Assembly (NCBI GenBank): GCA_943704425.1
Contig: CALSCP010000733.1
Coordinates: forward strand, 1 to 64,000
Source of the DNA: Ministeria vibrans ATCC 50519
Lineage: Eukaryota > Protista > Filasterea
DNA length: 64,000 nt
Reading direction: 5' to 3'
Below the pieces are notes generated by a model. That model did no database searches. It saw nothing but the letters and a program-made list of their open reading frames with translations, and had not been told where the DNA came from. Shown here piece by piece: positions 3,205 through 64,000 of this stretch (position 1 is its first letter; every line of letters begins with the position of its first letter). The position numbers were made by a program, and so were the translations under genes.

Positions 3205-4566
3205 TGGTGCGCCGGCAGCGACGGCAAAGCGAGTACGAATAAAACGTATAATTGTCTTGTGCTTTCACATTGCTGTCACACGACGGTTGAGTTGAAACTC
3301 TCCTTTGTGGCCGATAGCGACAAGCGCGGCGGGGATTATAAACGAGTGGTGGGTGTTGGGAGTCGTTGAATTTGAGCATTCATTCGAGTGGCGACCGAGA
3401 AGGAAAACAGAATAAGAAGCGCAAGGAAAAAAAAGAAAAGAAAAAGGAAAACGCGATGGGCTGGTGTTGGAGCAGGCGACGTTAGGCATGGCTGGCATGT
3501 GCGAAGGAATCGAAGGCGTATCGACTTACCGGAGTATCATCAGAGGCATTGGAAGATTGGGCAGCCTTTGGCTTGGCAGTGGGTTCGGCAACGCGACAGC
3601 GCATCGCAGTGCACGTCTCGTCGTCGCTCTCGTCATCGCTGTGCGGCGCCGTGATTACCATTGCCGTCCAAGGCAATTTGTCACCTTTTAAAACATACGA
3701 TTCAGCACAGCGCAACGGTTCGCAAGGGTGTGCATTGCCACGCACACGCGGCCAACAACGCCCCATTGCCAGTTGCAACCCCCCAAGAACCCCCACCGTC
3801 CTGCCTCACACCCTTTCCCCCAACCGCCCCGCCCTCCCCCTTCCCTTCCGACCTCGCCACCCCCTNNNNNNNNNNCCCCCCCCTCCGCCCATCCTCTTTT
3901 AACCACAAAGAAAATCGCCCGACCCCCCCACACACACCTTCCCCATAGTAGCCCATAAAACGTTAACGGCTCACCCCCCAATGTCACGCGTGCCATATGC
4001 TATAGGTTTCGCGCCCAAAAATTGAAGCCCGCGAAGAAATCCAAAAAAAGAGACCGGCGCAGTCACTCATAGCCTCACACCCACACGCTCTTACCGTCGC
4101 TGCTCATGGTACCAAGAGAGTGGCAAAGAATAGAATTTTTTGACGTTTCAGGAAACTGGAAAATTCAATAAAAACTGTGTGATGAAATGATCACTTTGCC
4201 GGAAAGCGACAAGCGTGCACGCGGCTCGCACACAGACCGCACTTGCTCTGACAGACAGGCTCACAGACTGACACAGTGACACTCACTGACTCGAAGAGGG
4301 CGCAGAAGGAATTAGTATCGTTTGTTGAGAAATGAAAGGAAATGAAAAAGTATATCCAAAGTATTCCTCCAATTCAGCAGGCTCGGTTGGGGCTGCAATT
4401 GGCAAGAGGGCGTGGCAGTCTGGCTGTGTCTAACATTTCACGGTGACTGGGCTGACTGGCAGGACCGTATCGTGAACAAATTGGTTGCAATGAGGTTCGG
4501 TTCATCTTCGTAATGTGAAACGGAAGTGAAGTGAAGCGTTCTGTCAAAAATAGAGGCTTCATCACA

Positions 4567-7004: not shown

Positions 7005-10000
7005 ATGCACGCTCTCGATGGCGGCGCAGCGTCGCCCGACGAGGTCGCGCCAGCCAGCGACGAATCTTCCCCCGTGCACGCCAACGCCGACCCCCCGACA
7101 GCGCCCGACGCCCTTGTTGGTCCCCATCCTCGTACGTGTCATTCATGCACGCGCAGTCGTCTGGCGTCTGTCGATCTCTCGCCCCACAACCAATAATATA
7201 ATATTCTCTTTTTGCTCTGTGGCATTTTCGGTCGAATTTAAAACTCACATCATATCTCACTTGCCCTTTCTTCTTTTCAGCATCCATCGCCGAATTACCA
7301 ACCTACCGCGAGCAGGCTGCCTGGTACAAGGAAGCGGAAGCGTCCAATCAGATGAAAGAAGGCGACCATTGGTAAAAAGAATTCATATCACAGTCACATT
7401 TTTGTTATACAATTATTAATTTTAATTAATAACGGTTGAGTATCTCGCCTATTTTTTTTGTTTTGTTTTTTGTTTCCTCCGTCGCATCTGACTCCATCTT
7501 GATTCCCGTCCGCTCATCGGCCCTTACCGTTCCGTGTAGGTATCTCGTTGCGCAAAAATGGTTCGACGGGTGGCGGCGATTCAGTCGGAGCGGCGGCGAC
7601 CGTCCAGGACCCATCGACCAGAGCACCATTCTTGATGCACACACAGGCCAGCTGCTGGAGGGGCTCTTTGAACACCTAGAGGTTGCATATGTGTGCGAGC
7701 CCGTCTGGCTTATGCTCCTCGCGTGGTACGGCCTCGACGTCGATTCACGTCCTGTCCGCCGTCGTGTCTCACGCAACAGCCGTTTGAACAACACACTCAT
7801 CATCGCCGTTTACAAGAAGGTCGTCAGCGTATTCCACACGTCGCACCCCAGCACCAGCGTTGCCGTACGTGTCCACATCTACGAGACTATGGGACATGTC
7901 AAGAAACTGGCGCTCGACGCGCTCGCCCAATCGCCGCAAATCACGTCGATTACCCCCGCAACGTTGCCAGCGCTCGTCGACACACGCCTCCTCAACGGCA
8001 ACGTCGTTGTCAAAGAATCCGACAAATTTATTGACATACCGGACACAGCGGTGTTTGTCCTCGATGTGCGCGAGCCTGGCCAAGAGTGGTCCACTCCAAG
8101 TTTGTCGTCGACTAACCTCGCGGCCAAAAGCGCCCCCGTCTGGCCAGCACGCATGGACACTGCAATCACTACAACTTCAACAGCATCGACAAACACCGGC
8201 ACGAGCACCGCTCTTGCGCGTCCCAAGCCCCTCTACTCAACAGCGGGCTCGGGCTCGGCTCTTGGCTATGGCGCGTCGTCATCATCCACCACCTCTTCTT
8301 CTGGCCTTTCGTCGCTCTACGGCACAGGCACATCGTCGTATGCCAACCGAACCCAATCACCGCCGGGCGTCACGGGTCTGTCCAACCTTGGCAACACCTG
8401 CTTCATGAATGCGGCGCTGCAATGCCTGAGCAACACGCGAGCGCTCCGCGACTTTTTTATCAACGACACCTTCGTCGAGCAAATCAACCGCGACAATGTC
8501 ATGGGCACCAAGGGTGAGCTTGCGGAAGCATTTGGCGAGCTTCTCAAGCGCATGTGGACCGGGGGCTACTCGTCGGTGTCGCCGTCACACCTTAAGACAG
8601 CCATTGGCCGCAAGAACACCGCCTTCTCAGGCTACCAGCAGCACGACTCGCAAGAGCTCCTCTCCTTTGTGCTTGACACCCTCCATGAAGACCTCAATCG
8701 CGTGCTGGTCAAGCCCTACATTGAGATATCCGACTCGGGCACACGCCCAGATGCCGAAGTTGCCGCCGAGCAGATTGGTGCGCATCAGAAGCGCAACGAT
8801 TCGATCATTTGCGATATTTTCCAGGGTTTCTACAAGTCGCGCATTGTGTGTCCCGATTGCAACCGTGTCTCCGTCGTCTTCGACCCCTACTCGCTGCTTT
8901 CTGTACCTCTGCCTGGGCTTGGCAAGACCAACATTCAAGTGACGCTTATCCGTCGTGACCCAATGCAGCTGCCCACGCGCTTCCTTGTACAAGTGTCCAC
9001 GGGCGCCGGAACGCTCCGTAACGTCTACAAGGCTCTCGAGTCTGTGGCCATTGTCGATGCTGAACGCCTGGTGTGCTTTGAAGAGCACCGCGGGCGCCTT
9101 TGCAAGGTGTTCAAGGAGTCGGAGTCGGTGTCGGACACACGCGAGACGGACCATCTCGTCGTTGTCGAGGTCGAGGCCAAACCTCGGCTGCCGCCGCCCG
9201 TTCCCAAGTCGTCGTACAGCAGCAGTGGCTACTGGAGCTCCAATTACTACGGCGGTGGCAGTTCTGCCGCCGTCAAGGAGGAGCCTGTTGTGCCCGATGA
9301 CCCCGCCAGTCTACCTGTTGTTTTTCTCAGTCACGAATTTTACACGACACACTACTCCTACGCCACCTACTTCTTTCCGTCGGCCTTGTCCCTCCCACGC
9401 ACCTGCTCATTTGCCGAATTTTACCAGCGTGCTTACGAGTCGGTAAGCACTTTATTGTTGTGGTGTGAGAGATGTGTGTATGTGTGAGTCTCTATTTTTT
9501 CGTTATTTTGATGCGATAGTCAAAAAAAAAATATTGTTTGTGTTCTTCTTCGTTTCATTTTTGTTTTTTGAACTTTTTGTTTCTTAGTGGGCGAAAACAA
9601 TGTGCATTTCGCCGGAGGTTGAGGAGTATTTGCGCGAGGCAGGGTACTGGGTACCGCCATGGACTAACGATGAGGAGCCAATGGAGGAGCAGGTGGAAGT
9701 AGAAGAGATTATGGCACAAGGCTGTGCGAGCGACACTGTCCACTATGAGGGTTCGCTGGTGGACTATGCTGTGAGCGAGGCAGACACGTGTGCGGGCGAG
9801 ACGCAACCCATGGATCTCGACGACGACGATGCCTTGGAGCGGGCGTACCGTGAGAGTGCGCCTGCGGCCACTGACGACACCCAGAGCAAGAAGATGTCTG
9901 CCGATGGTCTGGATGAGAATTACGACAACAGCGACGACGGCGCCAACATAAGCAACACGACGAAGAAGAACATGGCTCGCGTCCTGCCACCTTCGCTGAC

Positions 10001-11435
10001 CAGCAGTCTATCGTCTGTGGCGGCCGCAGCAAGCCTCGCAACCAATTTTACTAGCACCGCCACTCCCAGCAACAACGGTGCGGCGCTGACCTCTGCCTCG
10101 ATTGAGGACGAAATTGACGAGGACGACGCGAATCACGACTCTCTGTTGGACACAGGCGCTGCAAGCGTTGCTGTCGATGACTATTCGAGCGCGCAGTCGT
10201 CGACGTCGATGGTGACTGTGACCCCACCCGACTCGCCCGTGGTTGGGAACCACGCATCGTCACCATCGTCCAGCCGCCGAGTTGATACAGTACCGCCCAT
10301 GCGCAAGCTGCTGTTTCACATTTTCAACGACGATTATTCCAAGAAAAAGCTGTTGGCTACTGACGTGGTCGAGGCGAAGCCCAACTCGCGCTACATGTGC
10401 GAGTGGGATGCGTCGCTTAAGGACAAGCTCTCTGCGTTACCTCTTCCCGATGTGGTTGAAGATGCGAGTGTGGCCGAGGCGAAGGCGCGCCGCTCGAGTT
10501 CCGTGTCGGTACATGATTGCATTGAGCGCGCGCTGGTGGAGGAACAGCTCGACGACGACAACATGTGGTACTGTTCGCAGTGCAAGGAGCATCGTCGTGC
10601 CTTCAAGAAGTTTGATATTTGGACGTTGCCACGCGTACTTGTGATTGCTCTCAAGCGCTTCTCCTACTCGACCTACCGACGCAGCAAGATCAACTCGCCC
10701 GTGGACTTTCCCCTGCGTGGCCTCGACATGTCGCGCTACCTGTCTGGTCCGCGCACGGACGCACAAGGCCGCCCTGTACCCACCGTTTACGACCTGCAGG
10801 CGATCAGTAACCACTATGGAGGTTTGGGTGGCGGTCACTACACGGCGTGTGCTCGCAACGGCTCGCAATGGTACAACTTTGATGATTCGTACACGACGAA
10901 GTTGAGCGAGGCTGATGTGCGCGCACGCGACGCTTGCGGCGCCGCCTATGTTCTTGTGTACGTGCTGCGTGACGAAGAGCAAGAAGCTTTTGATCGTAAG
11001 AGAGGGGAGGAAGAGGAGGCGGAGGCGGCATCAGTAGGCGAGGATACCGGTCGCGACATGGACACGAGCGATGACGATGACTTTGGTGATTCGCGCAACA
11101 CGCTCCATTCCCCACAGGGTGCTTCGACAACGACAACTACTACTGCAACAACATCATCAACCGCAGCATCAACCGCAGTCGCATCATCACCGCTTTCAAG
11201 TGTGGCTACTGGTGGGGCTCCTGCTGTTCACACAGTACCTCCATACGAGGACGACGACGACAGCGACGACGATGATTTGACGCACCCCACTTTGGTGCAC
11301 TTTCCCTCGGCCAACACCCATGGCACCACCACCACCACCACTACTACTACTACTGCTCCGGCTGCGCCCATGGACACCATCCGTGCCACTCCCGCTGACG
11401 ACGATGATGATGAGGGTATCGTGCTTATCACTTGA
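7005..11435 (+). CDS. Ubiquitin-specific protease, USP4/11/15-like (DUSP-UBL-split catalytic domain)
   Basis: DUSP-like W|YLVAQKWFDGW..PGPID; Cys box GLSNLGNTCFMNAALQCL; QQHDSQELL; EEQLDDDNMWYCSQCKEH; His box HYGGLGGGHYTA..WYNFDDS. Introns near 7132-7280, 7372-7539 and 9443-9587. Confidence 0.93.
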
Positions 11436-49643: not shown

Positions 49644-49889
49644 ATGAGCTTTTTGAAGGACACATATAATCAATGGGTGTCGAGGCGACGTGAAGCCTCT
49701 GAGGCGGCGCGCGCGTCCTCGGACTGTCGCGACATGGTCCGCCGCATTGAGACGATGGTTGCAGACGCACACACCACGCGCCGCGTCGCCGTCTTCACAA
49801 GCCTCATTGGATCTCTGACAGGACGCTCCCCCCGAAAGGCCACGCCCTACTCTATGGCTGCGTAAGAAATGGAACGGAGAAAAAAAAAG

Positions 49890-49925
<36 letters not shown>

Positions 49926-55900: not shown

Positions 55901-58900
55901 TCATTGATGAAATTAACTGCTGTACATCCGGTGTACTTGAGCTGTTGCGCAGCTTAATGCTGGATCGTCATCTCATGTCGACCCACGAGCACCTGCGCAT
56001 TTCCAAGGACGTATGGTTTGTCTCTGCATGCAATCCATACCGCGCCGTGATTCACAAAGACGAGGCGACCCTCTCGGCGGCCTACACAGTGTTGCCACTG
56101 CCGCACTCTCTGTGCCAAGTGCGGCTTCCACTGGACGTACTCGACCTGAACGATCTCAACTACATTGTGGCGTCGCGTGTACAGGCGTGGCTATGCGAGC
56201 AGAAAATGGACCACGCCGATGGTGCCGTCTTCACTCGACTTCTGATGAGTCTACATCTTGCGGCCGAGATGTACGCAAGTTCACGGTGGAAGCAAGGTGC
56301 AGGTGCGCCAGCTGTGTCGCTGCGCGAGCTTGACCGAACGCTGGCGCTTGCGGGTGCCTGTTGGCAGCACACTGGTGCGACGAGCGTGCTGTTCCATCGC
56401 TTGACAAATGTCAACTCGCTGGCACTTTGTTGTCTCCAGATGGTTGGGGGTGTGGTGTATCTGTCTCGTGTACCTGTTGGGGAGCTCGACTTGCTGGTGA
56501 AGTCGGTGGGCGAGATTGATGCAAACGCCAAGAGCGACATTGAACATGCGTCGAAGGCGATGCACGAGTGTGGCTTGGCGCTTTGTACAGAATTGCGCGT
56601 GACGGTCAATGTGAGCATTGTGCCGACGGAAGGTGTGCAACGGATGCTGCTGCTTTTGTACACGCATGCGATGGGACGCTGTCCGGTTTTCTTAGTGGGT
56701 CCACCAGGTAGTTCGAAGTCACTGACGCTCAAGCTTTTCACGGAGGCGGTCGGTGATGCGCGTCTGCGTCTCGAAAGTCCTTTTGTGCGGGGTATCCCGG
56801 AGATTTCCGTGAGCATTCTGCAGTGCTCGAAGAGTCTCACCGAGGAAGCACTGCGTGGTGAGTTCAGACGCTCAAAAGAATATTTGGGGAGTCTACAGAG
56901 CGAGCAGGAGGCGGCGCTGGTGGTGCTGGAAGAACTTGGACTGGCGTGTTCGGCGACAGACTTGCCGTCGCTCAAGGTGATCCACAGTCTGCTTGACCGT
57001 CAGCAGCATGCTTCTCTTAAGAACCGTGTTGGCTTTGTGGCGCTCTCCAACTCCCTTGTGGACGCAGCCAAAATGAATCGCGGCACGGTGATGATGGTGG
57101 AGCGGATGAGCGGCGAAGAGATTCAGACGACGCTGCAATCAATGTTGAAGCCCGGCCATGGCATTTCTCAACAATCGTTTGACGATGTTTTGCTCTTTTT
57201 GAGTTCCATTCGCGACGGCCGAGACCCTGTTTACTTTATGTATGGCTGCCGCGACATTTTTTCTTTTTTGAACAATGTGCGTTGCTATCTGGACCAGGCA
57301 GCGCCTCTGGGAGATACAGCTGGTGCAGTCAATGTGCTCAACTGTGGCTGTAAACGAACTCTAGCTCATGTCGTGAGCGAGGCTGTGCGCAAGGCGCTGT
57401 TGCGCGAGTTTGGCGGCACTGCACTGATGAGCGAGTTGGTGCAGCAACTGGTGCAACATCACGCCGCTCTGACACACGCTGATCCGATGTGCGCGAGCAG
57501 GCCGCTCGATCTCTTGCGCCAAATGACGTCTCTCCGTGTATCAGCGAGCGCCAATACTTTTGCTATGCACGACCGACCTCTCTTGTGTCTGACCAGACTC
57601 AAACCCATGTCGTATTGGCTTGAGTTGCTGCATATGCCGCGACCGAGCAAAAACGAGTGGCTGTCCATTCTTGCGTATCCTGGCTTGCGCTCGAGCGGCT
57701 CAGTTGCTGTGCCCTCCGAAGCGGCTTTGCTGGAGGATTTCATGGTGTGCATGGGGAAGGGTGGGGCGCGGTGGGTACAGGCCGATGAGTCGTTGTACGC
57801 GTCGTTGCTTGATGTGCTTAATGGGCACGCATTCATTCGTTCGGCTGACGATCGCGACACGACAATGGTCCGCGTGGCCTTGCGTGGCCGATCGCTCTAT
57901 GCTCCGATGCGCGCCTCCTTCCGTCTCATGCTTGTGCATCCGCTGGCCGAAGCAAACAAGTGGCACCCCGCCCTTCTGAATCGAACGCATAAGATTGAAT
58001 TCAAAACGGACGATCTTGTGCGACGAGTTGTCCAACACCTTGTGAGCGACACGGAAGAGGAGTTTGAAGAGCGACGCAAGAACCTTTTGAATTTGGCCCA
58101 CTACCTCACGGAGTGTGTGGCCCCCTGTGTAACTGTACCCCTTGTGCAGGAGTCACTGGCACTTGCTGCTCTCTGGGAGGTCTGTCACCTGGTGTATCCG
58201 CACACCCTTGACTCAGAGGCCGAGAGCACGAGTTCGCTGGAGATCACTGAGAAGTCACCGTCGGAGTGTGCGCTCGAGGAGATGCAGCGCATCGTCGCCG
58301 AACACGAGTCGTCATTGCTAGACAACGACCATGGGCGTGTGGCATCTGTGAACCATGTTGCGTCGCTTTTCGCAGATGCGTCACCCTTCTTTCAGTGTAT
58401 TTGGATGCTTCACTCGCCGTTCTTGACGTCGCGTGATTTTATTCGTGCGCATTTAGCTCCGCTACTTGGCAAAGAAGTGATGCAAACACATACACTGATG
58501 GTGTTGCACGAGGAGCAAGACACACTTGAAGTGCCAGCGCATGAAACAGACCGTGCGCCGCTGATTGTGATTACGGCACGCTACCTCTACCTCAAAGTCA
58601 TCGACTGGAACTCACTGTGTGGCATGTTCGACGTGTCTTCCAAGTCGCAATCGCGACCGTTTGTTGTATTTGAGGTGGCCGTACAGGCCGAATGCGACGT
58701 TTTGCTGGCGTACATTATGGACGAGATGGGCCCTTACATTGACGAACTCGACTGTCTCGTGCTCATGTGTGGTGCGCTTGATGTGATGGAATCTGCGTCT
58801 GTGCGTGTGATGGCCGCGCCCAACTGGCGCTTCTGTACAGTTGAGCCAAGTGCCCTGTTGAAACTGCCCGCCGAGACTGACTGTGTCTTTGGGGAGCGTG

Positions 58901-61323
58901 GCCGGCGTGTGCCGAAGAGCACACTACAATGGAGGTGTTTGTCCGAGGCGACTGAGGAGCGAGTGAAACGACACATTGGGGACGGTACGATGGTGACGTT
59001 GCTGCTGCACTTGTGTAGCGAGTCGGCGGACGGCAAAGCGGTGTGTGTACTGACCAGTACGCTCTCGCCGGTCACTTTTCGCCTGTTGTGCGATTCTGTT
59101 GCGGGCAGTCGACGCGGTGAGGCAAATGTTGTGCGGGTTGACGGTCACTGGAGTATAATTACTATATGTGCCGAATTACCATCTACGAGTCTTGGTGGTG
59201 GACAGGAGAGGGTGTGTGCATACAGTGACACAATATCAAGTGAACCAGTGACACTTTCGAGTCAATCTGTGCCGCGCGAGATTGGACAACTGGCACTGCG
59301 CTGGATATGGGACGTGTGTAACTCACAGGGGTATACACTGCGCCCTCGACTGTGCACGACGGTGGCGATGCAGGCTGGGGGGTCGAAACCTGTGTCCGAT
59401 AAACACGGCGGTGTGATGGCAAACGCGTCGGAGAAGAGTGAGCTGGTACAAATACATGTGGAATGCTGCGGAGCGCAGGGGAGAGAGAGGGCTTTTTCAT
59501 TGCTCGCTGCAATTCATCACTTTGTTCGACGAGTGGAGGTGGTGGACGAGCGCACGCTTCATCTGTTGCAGGAGCGTGAGGTGTTCAATCGACTTATCTT
59601 TAGGGGTGTGCTGGACGCATGCGGGACACCAGTGGCTGACTTAGCGGCCTGGTGCAAGAACAAGGAGCACTGCCAGATGCAGGTGTTGTCATCGGGCACA
59701 ATCACCGTTGAGGGACCCACTTCTGCGCTGGTGGACGACTGCATGCGCAAGATCGCCTTGGTTTTGGAGCATCTGGCGACGACAAAGCAGCAGATTGACT
59801 TGTGGGCTTTGACACAGCAACGAGGCTACGCATCAGAATGTGGGACTCGTTCCAAGGGTGGCACGTTTGCGGATGGGTGCGAGCAGCGAGTGTTCAAGGT
59901 TCTGGTGAGAGAGGTGCCTTTTGCGCATGTACGTGGCTCATTTGAAGTGACAGATGGCGACGGTGAGGGTGTGTTGGCGACGCTCACGTGCCGTAAGATT
60001 TTTTTCGACGTTTTGCGCGATGCAGTGTACGAGCATGTGGCACGACTGCGCAAGCAACTGTGTTTCCGTGTGTCAACACAACCCAGCATGTATTGTCGTC
60101 AATTACATGACACTGGACGGACCCATTCAAAGCTGGCGGCTGTGCAGATGGCCGTGACGGATCACTTGACGCCCATTGATCACGGCGTGAAGCTACTTGA
60201 GACAGATTTGCGCCAGGAGAGCCATCGTGAGAAGACTATGTTGTCTCTGTTGGCTCAGTTGCAGGTAGCAGCGGAGGAAGCGGATGGGGCAGGTCGCGGC
60301 GGCGACGGCGACATGCTCAGCGTGAAGCAAGCGGCGGAGATCCTCTCGGAGAGGCTGGAGTGGGGGGCGACCACACCGGAGAATGACGACGAGGAGGGTG
60401 TTGTGACGGTGAAGATGGTGCACAACCAAAAGGTCGCGCGTGAGGTGCGATTACAGAAGGAACAAGGCTTGAAGATGTGCGCGGTGCTCATGTGGGGGAC
60501 GCATGAGGCGCTGGAGCAAGCAGAAAAGGAACTGGCGAAATTCATTGATGGTATCTCACGGGATTTGTGCTGTCTGTGCTTCGTTCGCAAGCCTGTCGAC
60601 GTCTTGATTGCCTGTCCAAAGGGAGAGAAGGAACACCAGATGTGTACAGATTGCTTTGTAGCCGGAGCCAAGGTGCAACTGAAGAATCATGCATTGTTGA
60701 CGACGCGACTGTCTGCGTCACAACAGGTCCAGATTGTGTGCACCATTTGCGGTGTAGGGAAAGATGAACGTCTGCCCGCATACGCAATGACAACAGTGGT
60801 GGGTGTGGGTGACGAGTCACTGCTGACGGCCCTGAGTGAGGCGCAGAGGCGTGTGACGGAACAGATTGTTACGGAAGAAGTGCGGAAGCAGGTGCAGGCC
60901 GAGTATGATCGAGAGCTGGAGCGAATACGCAACATGGACACGGTCGATCGAGAGGTGTTTCAGCTGTGTCGCGAGGTGGAGAACATGCTGAATCTCGCGT
61001 GTCCACGGTGCAAAGTAGCCTTTGTAGACTTTGATGGCTGTCTCGCCCTCAAGTGCAGCAACTGTCCGTGCGGATTCTGTGCATTGTGTCTCAAGGATTG
61101 TGGCGGCGATGCCCATGCGCATGTGCTCCGTTGTCCCAAACGGAATGGCGCAGATTCGTATGGTAGGGCAGGAGAGTTTGAGGAAGTGCACCGGCTTCGT
61201 CGCACGCGCGAACTGGGGCGCATTCTGGGGAACATTACCAATGTCACAGTTTACAATCGCGTACGAACAAGCGCACTAAAATTTGTCGAGGGCCAACATA
61301 TCGCCGTACCTCCTCCACGATAA
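49644..61323 (+). CDS. RNF213/mysterin-like giant AAA+ ATPase with C-terminal RING + RBR-type RING2 (Rcat), ~3,860 aa, 2 exons
   Basis: Exon 1 49644-49861, GT-AG intron, exon 2 49953-61323. Motifs PLVLEGETGEGKT/IVFIDEINC/SACNPYR/YTVLPLPHSL/VSLRELDR; PVFLVGPPGSSKSL/QCSKS/VVLEELGLA..LKVIHSLLD/VGFVALSNSLVDAAKMNR; C-terminal CCLC..C..H..CTDC..CTIC and CPRC..FDGCLALKCSNCPCGFCALC..HAHVLRC. Confidence 0.88.
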
Positions 61324-61862: not shown

Positions 61863-63998
61863 TCACATTGTCGACATAGCCTGCTGTGCGATTCCACCAA
61901 TCTTCTGCACCAAAGCATTGTAGTCGCTCACATGGATCACAAGATCCTCCTTGTAGAACCCGTTGCGGTTATCATAATCACCCGCATAGCCAACGACAAG
62001 CGACACCATACTCTTCGCCATCTCCGAATTCTCCGTCACTACAACTCCAACTACAGTTGCATGGGCCTCGTTCACCAATTCACGAGCTACATGGGGAAAT
62101 CGCGAACGGTCATCAGCATTGGGATACCCATCCGTCTGAAAAATGACGAGGCGACGGGCTGCTTCTTTCGGACGCCAGTGAAGACTTGAAATTGCCATTT
62201 TAAGCGGTTTCGAGTACGCCGTCAAACCGAACGAGTGCCTCAAGTTGCGAATCCGGTTGGCACCTTCATCAAACGTCGTAGAGCCGCACTGAAAGTGTGC
62301 AAACACTTCAGAGTCACTCCCAAATGGAATGAGCGCCATCCGGTTGTCTGGGTTCCGCTTCAATGTGTCCTGGCACAGCTGCTGAGCAAACCGCACCGCT
62401 TGGTCTTTGTAACTCCACATGGAGCCACTCAGATCGAGAATCACACACACATCGCTTGGTGGGGTCAGCGTCACTTTGTTCAGCAGCTGGGGAAGCGGTA
62501 TGGATGATAGGCTAGGAGCAAGTGCCAGTTTTCTCAGCGACTCCGACGACGGCCCAGGCGCATCTGCCTTCAGACCCACAAAGTGCATGTCGACGCCTGT
62601 TAGCCAGGCTGTTGCGTTGGCCACGTAGCGGTCTGTGCCACCCTTCTCCCACTCCAACCACAACTTGGTAAAGCCCACATCGACTACCACACGGCCACGA
62701 TGGTCTCCAAAGTTTCCCTCGTTCACCACCACAAGAGACTTTGCTTCTTTTGGGCCTTTGTTAGCGGGAAAGCCTCCAGTCACCACCGTCTTCCAGTTCC
62801 GTGGAATATTCTGCGGCACAGCCACGGTCTCACCCTCATACAGCACTTGAATGCCCGTCATCAGGACGTGGTCGGGCGTTACGCTAAATTGCCCGCATGA
62901 CTGCATTGTGCCATCGGGAGCGGTTACTCCCTCTGCCGCCACAAAACTCCCGCCAGGAATGTTTCCCGCCAAATGCATCTTCCCGCCGGTAAGGGCACGC
63001 AAGACCACATTCGCATGCCAAAAGTGTGGATCATTCTCGCCAAACACAAACAGCCCACCTCGCTGCCGGTTGAAAGACAAGCACGCGCTCGCCAGTGTCT
63101 CTGCCAGCACCTCCACGCGTCTGGCTTGATTTTCGCATCGCCGCACCACGTCAACCTCAGGCCCACTAATCACCCAGGCCACTTGGAATTTACCGCTTTT
63201 CAACTTGTTCACAAACTCCATCTCATCACACACAATGTGCAACTGGAAGCCCTTGAGACCCAAGCGTGATTCGATGTTTTCTTTCAGGTTCTTAGTTTTC
63301 AAGTGACGTCGATACACAACCGGATCCCACAAAGTATCAGAGGGAAACAGCGTGCGACATTCTTGTCGTCGATGATGCTGCGGACTTAACCCAATTTGGA
63401 GGCCGTCGCGGACATAATCAAAGTCACGCATCATGTCGCCCTTCTTGCGCAAATTCTCCAAAATGAAGTTTGCCTCCTTGTCGCTGCGGCACTTCATCAT
63501 CAGGAAGCCGTATTCCACCGAAAAGTCGCCCAGAAGCACATGAAAGCCATCAAAGGCCTTCTCCCGTGCCAAGTCAAAGTGCGCCCCTCGCGGATTCTTG
63601 TACTCGTCCTGCACCACAGTCTTCTTCTTCAGCTCCTCACGCAAAGCCGCCGCCCCCAGAGTTTGATTGTAGTACGCCAGAATGCCCGGATGCTCCACTC
63701 GAAGCAAACGAGAGACCACTTTCAAGCTCGCGCGTCGGCGCTCCTCAAGCTCTGCCTTGGCACGCTCCATCATCAGAGTTGTCGCATCGCGTCGTGTCGA
63801 CCGATCATCACACCCGTGCAAATGGCGAAAGTGGTCTTGCAACACTTTACGCGCCTCGATGTCATGCCACGCCGCTCCAGGCCAAATCTCGTTTGACTTT
63901 CGAAGGGTGCACAAACCGTCGAAAAACGTGCGCTTTAGAAAGTCTGGCGATTCCAACAGCTGCTTCACCTTGATCGGCGCCAGCCATGGCTTATGCAA
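61863..63998 (-). CDS. GATase1-like (class I amidotransferase-like fold) domain + C-terminal VWA domain; runs off the window edge
   Basis: 711-codon uninterrupted frame. VWA with intact MIDAS (DVCVILDLSGSM..TAY..LVIFQTDG). Middle domain DEYKNPRGAHFDLAREKAFDG..VAWVISG..GGLFVFGENDP..GRVVVDVGFTKL..RYVANATAWL. Confidence 0.75.
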   Translation of the reverse strand: MHKPWLAPIKVKQLLESPDFLKRTFFDGLCTLRKSNEIWPGAAWHDIEARKVLQDHFRHLHGCDDRSTRRDATTLMMERAKAELEERRRASLKVVSRLLRVEHPGILAYYNQTLGAAALREELKKKTVVQDEYKNPRGAHFDLAREKAFDGFHVLLGDFSVEYGFLMMKCRSDKEANFILENLRKKGDMMRDFDYVRDGLQIGLSPQHHRRQECRTLFPSDTLWDPVVYRRHLKTKNLKENIESRLGLKGFQLHIVCDEMEFVNKLKSGKFQVAWVISGPEVDVVRRCENQARRVEVLAETLASACLSFNRQRGGLFVFGENDPHFWHANVVLRALTGGKMHLAGNIPGGSFVAAEGVTAPDGTMQSCGQFSVTPDHVLMTGIQVLYEGETVAVPQNIPRNWKTVVTGGFPANKGPKEAKSLVVVNEGNFGDHRGRVVVDVGFTKLWLEWEKGGTDRYVANATAWLTGVDMHFVGLKADAPGPSSESLRKLALAPSLSSIPLPQLLNKVTLTPPSDVCVILDLSGSMWSYKDQAVRFAQQLCQDTLKRNPDNRMALIPFGSDSEVFAHFQCGSTTFDEGANRIRNLRHSFGLTAYSKPLKMAISSLHWRPKEAARRLVIFQTDGYPNADDRSRFPHVARELVNEAHATVVGVVVTENSEMAKSMVSLVVGYAGDYDNRNGFYKEDLVIHVSDYNALVQKIGGIAQQAMSTM

Positions 63999-64000
63999 CT

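Follow-up and report, generated by a model that had tools for sequence, protein, structure and literature searches.

The subject of this analysis is a 64,000-nucleotide (nt) stretch of the genome of the filasterean Ministeria vibrans ATCC 50519 (assembly GCA_943704425.1, contig CALSCP010000733.1, positions 1 to 64,000 of the forward strand; hereafter the window) and, within it, a giant gene at 49644-61323 on the + strand. This nuclear gene, from a marine eukaryote with a small genome, is expressed and encodes an RNF213-family paralog of 3,862 amino acids (aa), in which an RNF213-type AAA core is followed by a C-terminal RING1-helix-Rcat cassette of the type found in RING-between-RING (RBR) ubiquitin ligases. 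We consider it likely that this end works as a ubiquitin ligase (E3) relay through the Cys of a DGC motif, gated by ATP, with a plausible part in surveillance. RNF213 (mysterin) and the superfamily 1 (SF1) helicase ZNFX1 act in cell-autonomous immunity, and no RNF213 relative with an RBR-type end was found in the literature searched.

The RNF213-type AAA core

An initial annotation, made from the sequence without database searches, had read the gene as an RNF213-like AAA+ machine, and database, solved-structure, BLASTP, hhalign and motif evidence all agree that the AAA body belongs to the RNF213 family. Protein searches used exon 2 from an in-frame ATG at 49993 (3,776 aa), leaving out exon 1 (72 codons) and the first 13 exon-2 codons; aa numbers count from this ATG, and adding 86 gives the full-length numbering. 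Among 5.8 billion proteins, the closest relatives of aa 1500-2800 are P0001 (3,820 aa, from a Logan assembly) and P0002 (from a JGI metagenome), at 30-31% identity with E-values of 5e-81 and 5e-78, followed by RNF213 of fish, bird, bivalve and Hydra (E 1e-23 to 5e-13). When the AAA part was searched against solved structures, RNF213 chains scored best (E 1.5e-22), the next relevant match was a dynein heavy chain (0.085), and midasin was not among the matches. By these scores the core sides with RNF213 and not with midasin or dynein, the grouping that the initial annotation had named as counting against its reading. The whole 3,776-aa query missed RNF213 in phmmer searches of solved structures and of a local set, whereas the AAA part alone matched it.

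The core, from about AAA1/2 to AAA5, spans 54115-58032 (+), as delimited by hhalign, the solved-structure search and BLASTP. Alignment with hhalign of a profile of the window protein with P0001 and P0002 against one of nine RNF213 sequences and one paralog from the same genome gave confident collinear blocks between aa ~1375-2680 and residues 1814-3142 of bird RNF213, and BLASTP aligned aa 1876-2427 with residues 2360-2921 of the bird protein, i.e., its AAA3 and AAA4 modules. A degenerate P-loop, SQSGKS (54550-54567, +), aligns with the P-loop RAGVGKS at RNF213 residues ~1953-1959, in the AAA module preceding AAA3, and the module that contains it is read from this alignment as AAA2, which in RNF213 holds ATP that is bound and not hydrolysed (PMC7311170). 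AAA3 extends from Walker A (GETGEGKT) to Walker B (FIDEINC) at 55678-55920 (+), as located by a motif table against RNF213 proteins and by Pfam AAA_5; AAA4, located by BLASTP, the motif table and Pfam AAA_7, has Walker A GPPGSSKS, the Walker B variant VVLEELG and a DAAKMNRG signature at 56698-57081 (+). The Walker A motifs of both modules are intact, and the signatures GETGxGKT, FxDExN, GxPGSSKS, VVLxExGLA and xSNxxxDxAKMNRG are common to the window protein and RNF213.

Every motif quoted in the initial annotation was found in one frame at the position given for it: in the core SQSGKS (54550), GETGEGKT (55678), IDEINC (55903), GPPGSSKS (56698), LEELGLA (56926), DAAKMNR (57061) and HPALLNRTHK (57964), then ITVEGPTSALVDDCMRKI (59701) and VLMWGTHEALEQAEKELAKFI (60484), and in the cassette CCLC of the RING (60568), CPRC (61000) and FDGC (61030).

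The Pfam matches of the core are to the generic families AAA_5 (aa 1891-2017, E 3e-10) and AAA_7 (aa 2203-2253, E 3e-7), and one relative carries the source label 'MoxR-like ATPase', both of which would suit a generic AAA protein of the dynein, midasin or MoxR class whose likeness to RNF213 is only a shared AAA_5 superfamily signal. However, the solved-structure search gives RNF213 chains E 1.5e-22 against 0.085 for the best dynein and includes no midasin, family-specific motifs are common to both proteins (LDEIGLAE/LEELGLAC and ISNWxLDxAKMNRG/LSNSLVDAAKMNRG), and several AAA modules are collinear, so that this explanation is already disfavoured and, in our estimate, highly improbable. A scan of metagenomes with an AAA4 alignment gave no match.

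The Walker B of AAA4 (56926-56946) reads EE instead of DE, as the initial annotation had noticed. The motif table shows that the change is specific to the clade of the window protein, P0001 and P0002, every RZ-type sequence examined having DE, and on the sequences compared it is a shared derived character of this RBR-type clade. According to PMC12075652, RNF213 Walker A mutants, which do not bind ATP, lose E3 activity, whereas Walker B mutants, which do not hydrolyse it, keep it. Because ATP binding rather than hydrolysis activates the RNF213 E3 in that study, the EE Walker B need not matter to E3 gating; by analogy, a weakened hydrolysis site would not prevent ATP-gated activation.

The C-terminal RING1-helix-Rcat cassette

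The last ~260 aa form the cassette, which begins with an RBR-type RING1 of C3HC4 pattern (60568-60753, +), recognised from an AlphaFold2 model compared with RING1 of RNF216 and parkin and from a profile match to parkin RING1. A helical linker in place of an IBR follows (60754-60999, +), in which ~80 aa without Cys or His separate the RING from the CPRC finger. The cassette continues with an Rcat-like zinc finger of the form CPRC-x9-C-x4-C-x2-C-x4-C-x2-C..DAHAH..C (61000-61134, +), supported by profile comparison with RING2, by its predicted fold and by sub-threshold Pfam IBR_1 matches, and ends in C-terminal helices. The candidate catalytic residue is the C of FDGC (61039-61041, +), a conserved non-ligand Cys whose 'GC' aligns with that of RBR RING2.

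A profile of the cassette family matches parkin RING1 with an E-value of 2.4e-4 and scores +11.0 bits on parkin RING2 as against -0.7 bits on the parkin IBR; RING2 of CUL9 (E 0.008) and of ariadne (E 0.037) are matched as well. AlphaFold2 modelled the cassette with the family alignment at a pLDDT of 88.7, with helices at residues 129-167 and 171-187 (pLDDT above 90) and no zinc site between the two fingers; the family consensus likewise has no Cys/His cluster of IBR (BRcat) type there. In a Foldseek search with this model, all matches at ranks 1-38 (above E 0.25) were RBR ligases, RNF216 being first at 5e-4. Realignment with VIA superposed model residues 43-149 on RNF216 RING1 (512-601; Z 9.6, rmsd 3.0, 90 aa) and on parkin RING1 (234-329; Z 8.6), and model residues 168-284 on the helix-RING2-helix unit of RNF216 with Z 6.6 over 102 aa, which is 'middling' on the tool's scale. 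RNF216, parkin, HHARI and HOIP are the ligases whose fold the model matches. The RING, helix and RING2-like finger proposed in the initial annotation were thus recovered in the alignments and in the predicted fold, where the C-terminal Cys cluster resembles RING2.

Across 47 aligned family members the eight expected zinc ligands show no or almost no variation, and the Cys of 'DGC' is conserved in at least 90% of these 47 and of 181 members (domain matches). This Cys would lie outside the eight zinc ligands expected from the Rcat pattern of RBR ligases. The '.GC' of the cassette aligns in the profiles with 'GGC' of parkin RING2 and 'EGC' of CUL9 RING2, which we take to contain the active-site cysteines. 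The family further has a near-invariant DCGxDAHxHV motif with two near-invariant His in DAHxH, one of which may be free.

Among the nearest known systems are the RBR ligases, RNF216/TRIAD3 being the closest of these, then parkin, HHARI/ARIH, HOIP and CUL9. The cassette shares with them the RING1 fold and its trailing helices, the helix-RING2-helix unit, the Rcat pattern C-x2-C-x9-C-x4-C-x2-C..C-x2-C and a conserved non-ligand Cys after Gly. We note four differences. First, the cassette has two long helices instead of the IBR, a domain that in RBR ligases helps to hold the donor ubiquitin. Second, HHARI, parkin and HOIP have a catalytic His two residues past the Cys, whereas the cassette has none at Cys+2 (DGCLALKC in the window, DGCFALTC in the family consensus) and carries the DCG-x-DAH-x-HV motif. 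Third, no Pfam family captures the cassette above threshold. Fourth, the bodies that carry it are AAA+ proteins, SF1 helicases and kinases. The initial annotation's design of a RING with a Cys-based RING2 stands, with the RING now specified as an RBR-type RING1, but the IBR and the Cys+2 His of a canonical RBR ligase are missing.

These differences bear on whether the finger is catalytic at all. A non-catalytic finger of IBR (BRcat) type, in a protein that is an ordinary RING E3 or whose finger only binds ubiquitin or a partner, would accord with the absent His, with Pfam matches that are to IBR models, below threshold (IBR_1 gives sub-threshold scores in 17 of the 47 members), and with the single fold shared by IBR and RING2, owing to which a fold match cannot separate them. 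We nevertheless regard it as unlikely, for the non-ligand Cys sits exactly at the Rcat 'GC' position in at least 90% of the 181 members, the profile prefers RING2 of parkin over its IBR and also finds RING2 in CUL9 and ariadne, the model superposes on the helix-RING2-helix of RNF216, and some cassette homologs carry PF26200, Rcat_RNF216.

RZ-type relatives, spread of the cassette and possible role

The window protein resembles RNF213 in its giant size and long N-terminal arm, in the collinear dynein-like AAA core with an AAA2-like degenerate P-loop and the Walker A/B and signature motifs of AAA3 and AAA4, in a RING at similar spacing, ~850 aa past AAA5, and in a predicted Cys-based zinc-finger warhead near the C-terminus. 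It departs from RNF213 in three ways. First, the RZ finger is absent, as the initial annotation had claimed: PF20173 has no match in the window protein at E<=1 in a Pfam scan, though the same model finds three other loci in the organism's own 29.7-Mb genome (E 3e-16 to 4e-22). An E3-shell and a C-terminal domain equivalent to those of RNF213 were likewise not detectable with hhalign, the confidence of which is low beyond aa ~2760. Second, the warhead is an RBR-type pair of RING1 and Rcat, 190 aa as against about 1,200 aa in RNF213. Third, AAA4 has the EE Walker B, and the protein falls in a clade apart from all RZ-type members, including those of its own genome.

The RZ-finger loci of the genome are a 4,763-aa open frame, RNF213-like, with AAA_5 and RZ (C486:116821-131109, +; searched by itself, PF20173 at 5e-16); a probable RNF213-like giant that is split between at least two frames and has a weak AAA3 match and an RZ finger (C894:11949-29999, -); and a 1,571-aa SF1 helicase that carries RZ and, among solved structures, matches ZNFX1 best (2.9e-78; C926:4096-8811, -). 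To our knowledge, RNF213 and ZNFX1 are the only RZ-finger proteins of humans and other animals.

In a maximum-likelihood tree of AAA3-AAA4, the window protein, P0001 and P0002 form the RBR-type clade with support 100/100, and the C486 paralog, the environmental P0004 and animal RNF213 form the RZ-type clade, also with 100/100; forcing the window protein and C486 into one clade is rejected (p-AU 1e-77). The tree is unrooted and holds RNF213-like sequences only, with no midasin or dynein included, so that what it shows is the separation of the RBR-type clade from RZ-type members. RZ-type copies are retained in the same genome and group with animal RNF213; the split from the RZ-type form therefore appears to be old, and as far as the sequences go it is a safe statement that the RBR-type end is not a recent swap from a resident RZ copy. 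Alignment with hhalign puts the Rcat-like finger (61000-61134) on the RZ finger of RNF213 (bird ~4425-4472) in collinear position with low confidence; this match is probably driven by Cys and His, i.e., compositional, and no evidence of homology. Each of the two fingers has a zinc knuckle, a free Cys and then C-x2-C.

The cassette itself extends far beyond this protein. A search with aa 3451-3776 against 1.84 billion representatives matched 2,298 clusters at a threshold of E<=1e-3, of which 1,146 remain at E<=1e-10, nearly always at the C-terminus, in proteins of 138 to 3,225 aa; ten members looked up were unnamed proteins from environmental assemblies. This is a large family (over 2,000 clusters) of putative RBR-like proteins lacking the IBR and not captured above threshold by current Pfam models. 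Among 31 long cassette proteins, 14 are SF1 helicases (AAA_11/AAA_12), 11 are protein kinases, 3 are DEAD/DEAH proteins and a few have LRR, CCCH or MATH domains. At 80 metagenome loci, a ZNFX1-like/SF1 helicase lies upstream of the cassette in 10 and a protein kinase in 14, and an RNF213-like AAA in none, many of the contigs being short. Two cassette-bearing SF1 helicases have ZNFX1 as their best match among solved structures (4.8e-53 and 1.4e-33), with UPF1 and SMUBP2 at 1e-12 to 1e-15. As side observations, a ZNFX1-like SF1 helicase is followed by the cassette in the same orientation on metagenome contigs L033, L037, L038, L040, L080 and L090, and a protein kinase precedes it at other metagenome loci, L053, L091 and L077 among them. 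The cassette pattern was not found in IMG/VR viral contigs, and a giant-virus origin is therefore not supported. The organism's own genome contains the cassette once, and the full architecture of RNF213 plus cassette was seen only in the window protein and the P0001/P0002 lineage. The cassette is, on this distribution, a predicted mobile effector module, widespread and not a one-off, with ZNFX1-like helicases and protein kinases as its main partners. The initial annotation's picture of an RNF213 body with a swapped Cys-based warhead holds for the architecture.

The proposed mechanism runs as follows. RING1 would dock a ubiquitin-charged E2, from which ubiquitin would pass as a thioester to the DGC Cys (codon 61039-61041) and then to substrate, in the manner of RBR ligases. 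Like RNF213, the protein would gate this E3 activity through the binding of ATP at AAA3/AAA4. Both transfer steps would be accomplished by the cassette, in ~260 aa. ZNFX1 offers a parallel: environmental-protist helicases with the cassette have it as their best solved relative, and the combination of its Miz-like domain and RZ finger is described in bioRxiv 2025.10.14.682297 as a 'bi-catalytic', RBR-like relay. Since the relay from Miz to RZ is described there as RBR-like, it would follow the same two-step logic as the cassette. Unlike the window protein, ZNFX1 is a helicase and not an AAA ring and its warhead is an RZ finger, and a ZNFX1-like gene of RZ type (C926) is itself present in the genome to which the window belongs.

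Several points weigh against reading the protein as an ATP-gated transthiolating E3 of RNF213 descent. The IBR is missing between RING1 and RING2, as is the His at Cys+2, and the Pfam IBR matches all lie below the gathering threshold. Global Foldseek TM-scores are low (~0.2), and the VIA score of the RING2 part is the middling one given above. The AAA3-AAA4 tree has long branches in addition to being unrooted, and one other lineage only shares the full architecture. Finally, no relatives could be detected for the linker of ~770 aa between the AAA core and RING1 or for the N-terminal ~1,370 aa, so that equivalence to the hinge, E3-back and N-arm of RNF213 is no more than putative.

The role of such a ligase can be approached by analogy with its animal relatives, and an immune or surveillance role is plausible on these grounds. 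It is quite possible, if short of probable, that the architecture is as described and the role is a housekeeping one (proteostasis, surveillance of organelles or lipid droplets, signalling turnover) and not the tagging of intracellular bacteria or viruses. The analysis contains nothing that connects the gene with infection, it lies among ordinary genes for a DUSP-UCH deubiquitinase, CFAP58, a bZIP factor and a PfkB kinase, its transcript is present in ordinary RNA-type runs, and the many protein kinases among the cassette partners suggest general signalling. However, both RNF213 and ZNFX1 serve as immune factors in mammals according to PMC12075652 and bioRxiv 2025.10.14.682297, it is these two chassis that carry either RZ or the cassette, and LRR, CCCH and MATH domains are also among the cassette partners.

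Since the cassette sits elsewhere on ZNFX1-like helicases and kinases, it plausibly plays the part of the animal RZ finger. A stronger version, which we hold tentatively and with some doubt, is that the IBR-less cassette is the protist counterpart of the RZ finger, the two being interchangeable Cys-based transthiolation warheads on two ancient sensor bodies, the RNF213-type AAA ring and the ZNFX1-type helicase; in that case RNF213 and ZNFX1 would have formed a surveillance pair before animals arose. Without the Cys+2 His, the cassette might also modify non-protein targets (lipids, glycans, RNA), as RZ fingers do.

For the RNF213 family, the comparison means that outside animals its body took at least two forms, in one of which a compact and well-understood type of warhead, the RBR RING1 and Rcat, replaces the poorly resolved RZ finger and E3-shell. 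The same cassette appears to have been fitted independently to ZNFX1-like helicases. The gene can be read as a domain swap made by nature that tests how an AAA ring might gate a transthiolating E3; it also offers biochemistry a small, foldable module (~260 aa) and bears on a pre-animal origin of ubiquitin-based pathogen sensing.

Gene model, divergent linker and genomic surroundings

The open reading frame listing of the window gives a long frame open at 49819-61320 (+). The start codon at 49644 lies in a different frame, and single-frame translation from there meets stops. A GTAAGA at 49862 and an AG at 49951-49952 would bring both frames into phase, and the frame change is resolved because the resulting GT..AG intron (49862-49952, +; 91 nt, with a long A-rich tract) joins the two. 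When public runs were aligned over 49400-53400, the RNA-type contigs X6 (starting at 49639) and X7 (starting at 49648) were found to join 49861 to 49953, skipping exactly 91 nt, whereas the DNA runs X1 and X3 lack the splice joint and their contigs stop at the A-rich tract in the intron. This joint shows that the gene is transcribed and spliced, with two exons: exon 1 at 49644-49861 (+), 72 codons and 2 nt (218 nt), and a single giant exon 2 at 49953-61323 (+), the split codon and 3,789 full codons up to the stop codon. Together, 218 nt and 11,368 nt of coding sequence give 3,862 codons, which confirms the gene span and the length of ~3,860 aa assigned in the initial annotation. With a length of 11,800 nt, the X6 contig is collinear as far as 53400 and, should this continue past the aligned stretch, would end ~200 nt beyond the stop codon. 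The A-rich tract itself measures ~60 nt (49874-49936), the DNA contigs ending at 49873 and resuming at 49937 and the spliced RNA contigs spanning the gap.

Between the AAA core and the RING lies the divergent linker (58270-60567, +), which contains the segments ITVEGPTSALVDDCMRKI and VLMWGTHEALEQAEKELAKFI described as KH-like in the initial annotation. It has no relatives and no Pfam match: aa 2700-3500 found no relatives in the 5.8-billion-protein search, KH has no Pfam match in the window protein at E<=1, and no GXXG loop is visible in the two segments. Language-model features of the linker place KH families nearest, with scores of 0.76-0.84, a weak lead. An AlphaFold2 single-sequence model of aa 3140-3520 reached a pLDDT of 46.7 and is unusable.

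The neighbouring genes, CFAP58 among them, are ordinary eukaryotic ones. At 7436-11432 (+), two adjoining frames resemble parts of a single, intron-split DUSP-UCH deubiquitinase of the USP4/11/15 type; all E2 genes of the genome are interrupted by introns. Immediately downstream of the gene (C733:61866-94601, i.e., window 61866-64000 and beyond; L007, L013-L015) are three more very large open frames. The first is a convergent 4,620-aa frame (-) with an AAA domain and a C-terminal VWA, for which no solved relative was found by sequence; the second is a 3,959-aa frame (+) with an AAA domain, and the third a 1,728-aa frame (+) with a 3'-5' exonuclease match. The window stretch is also present in algal, seawater and marine metagenomes.

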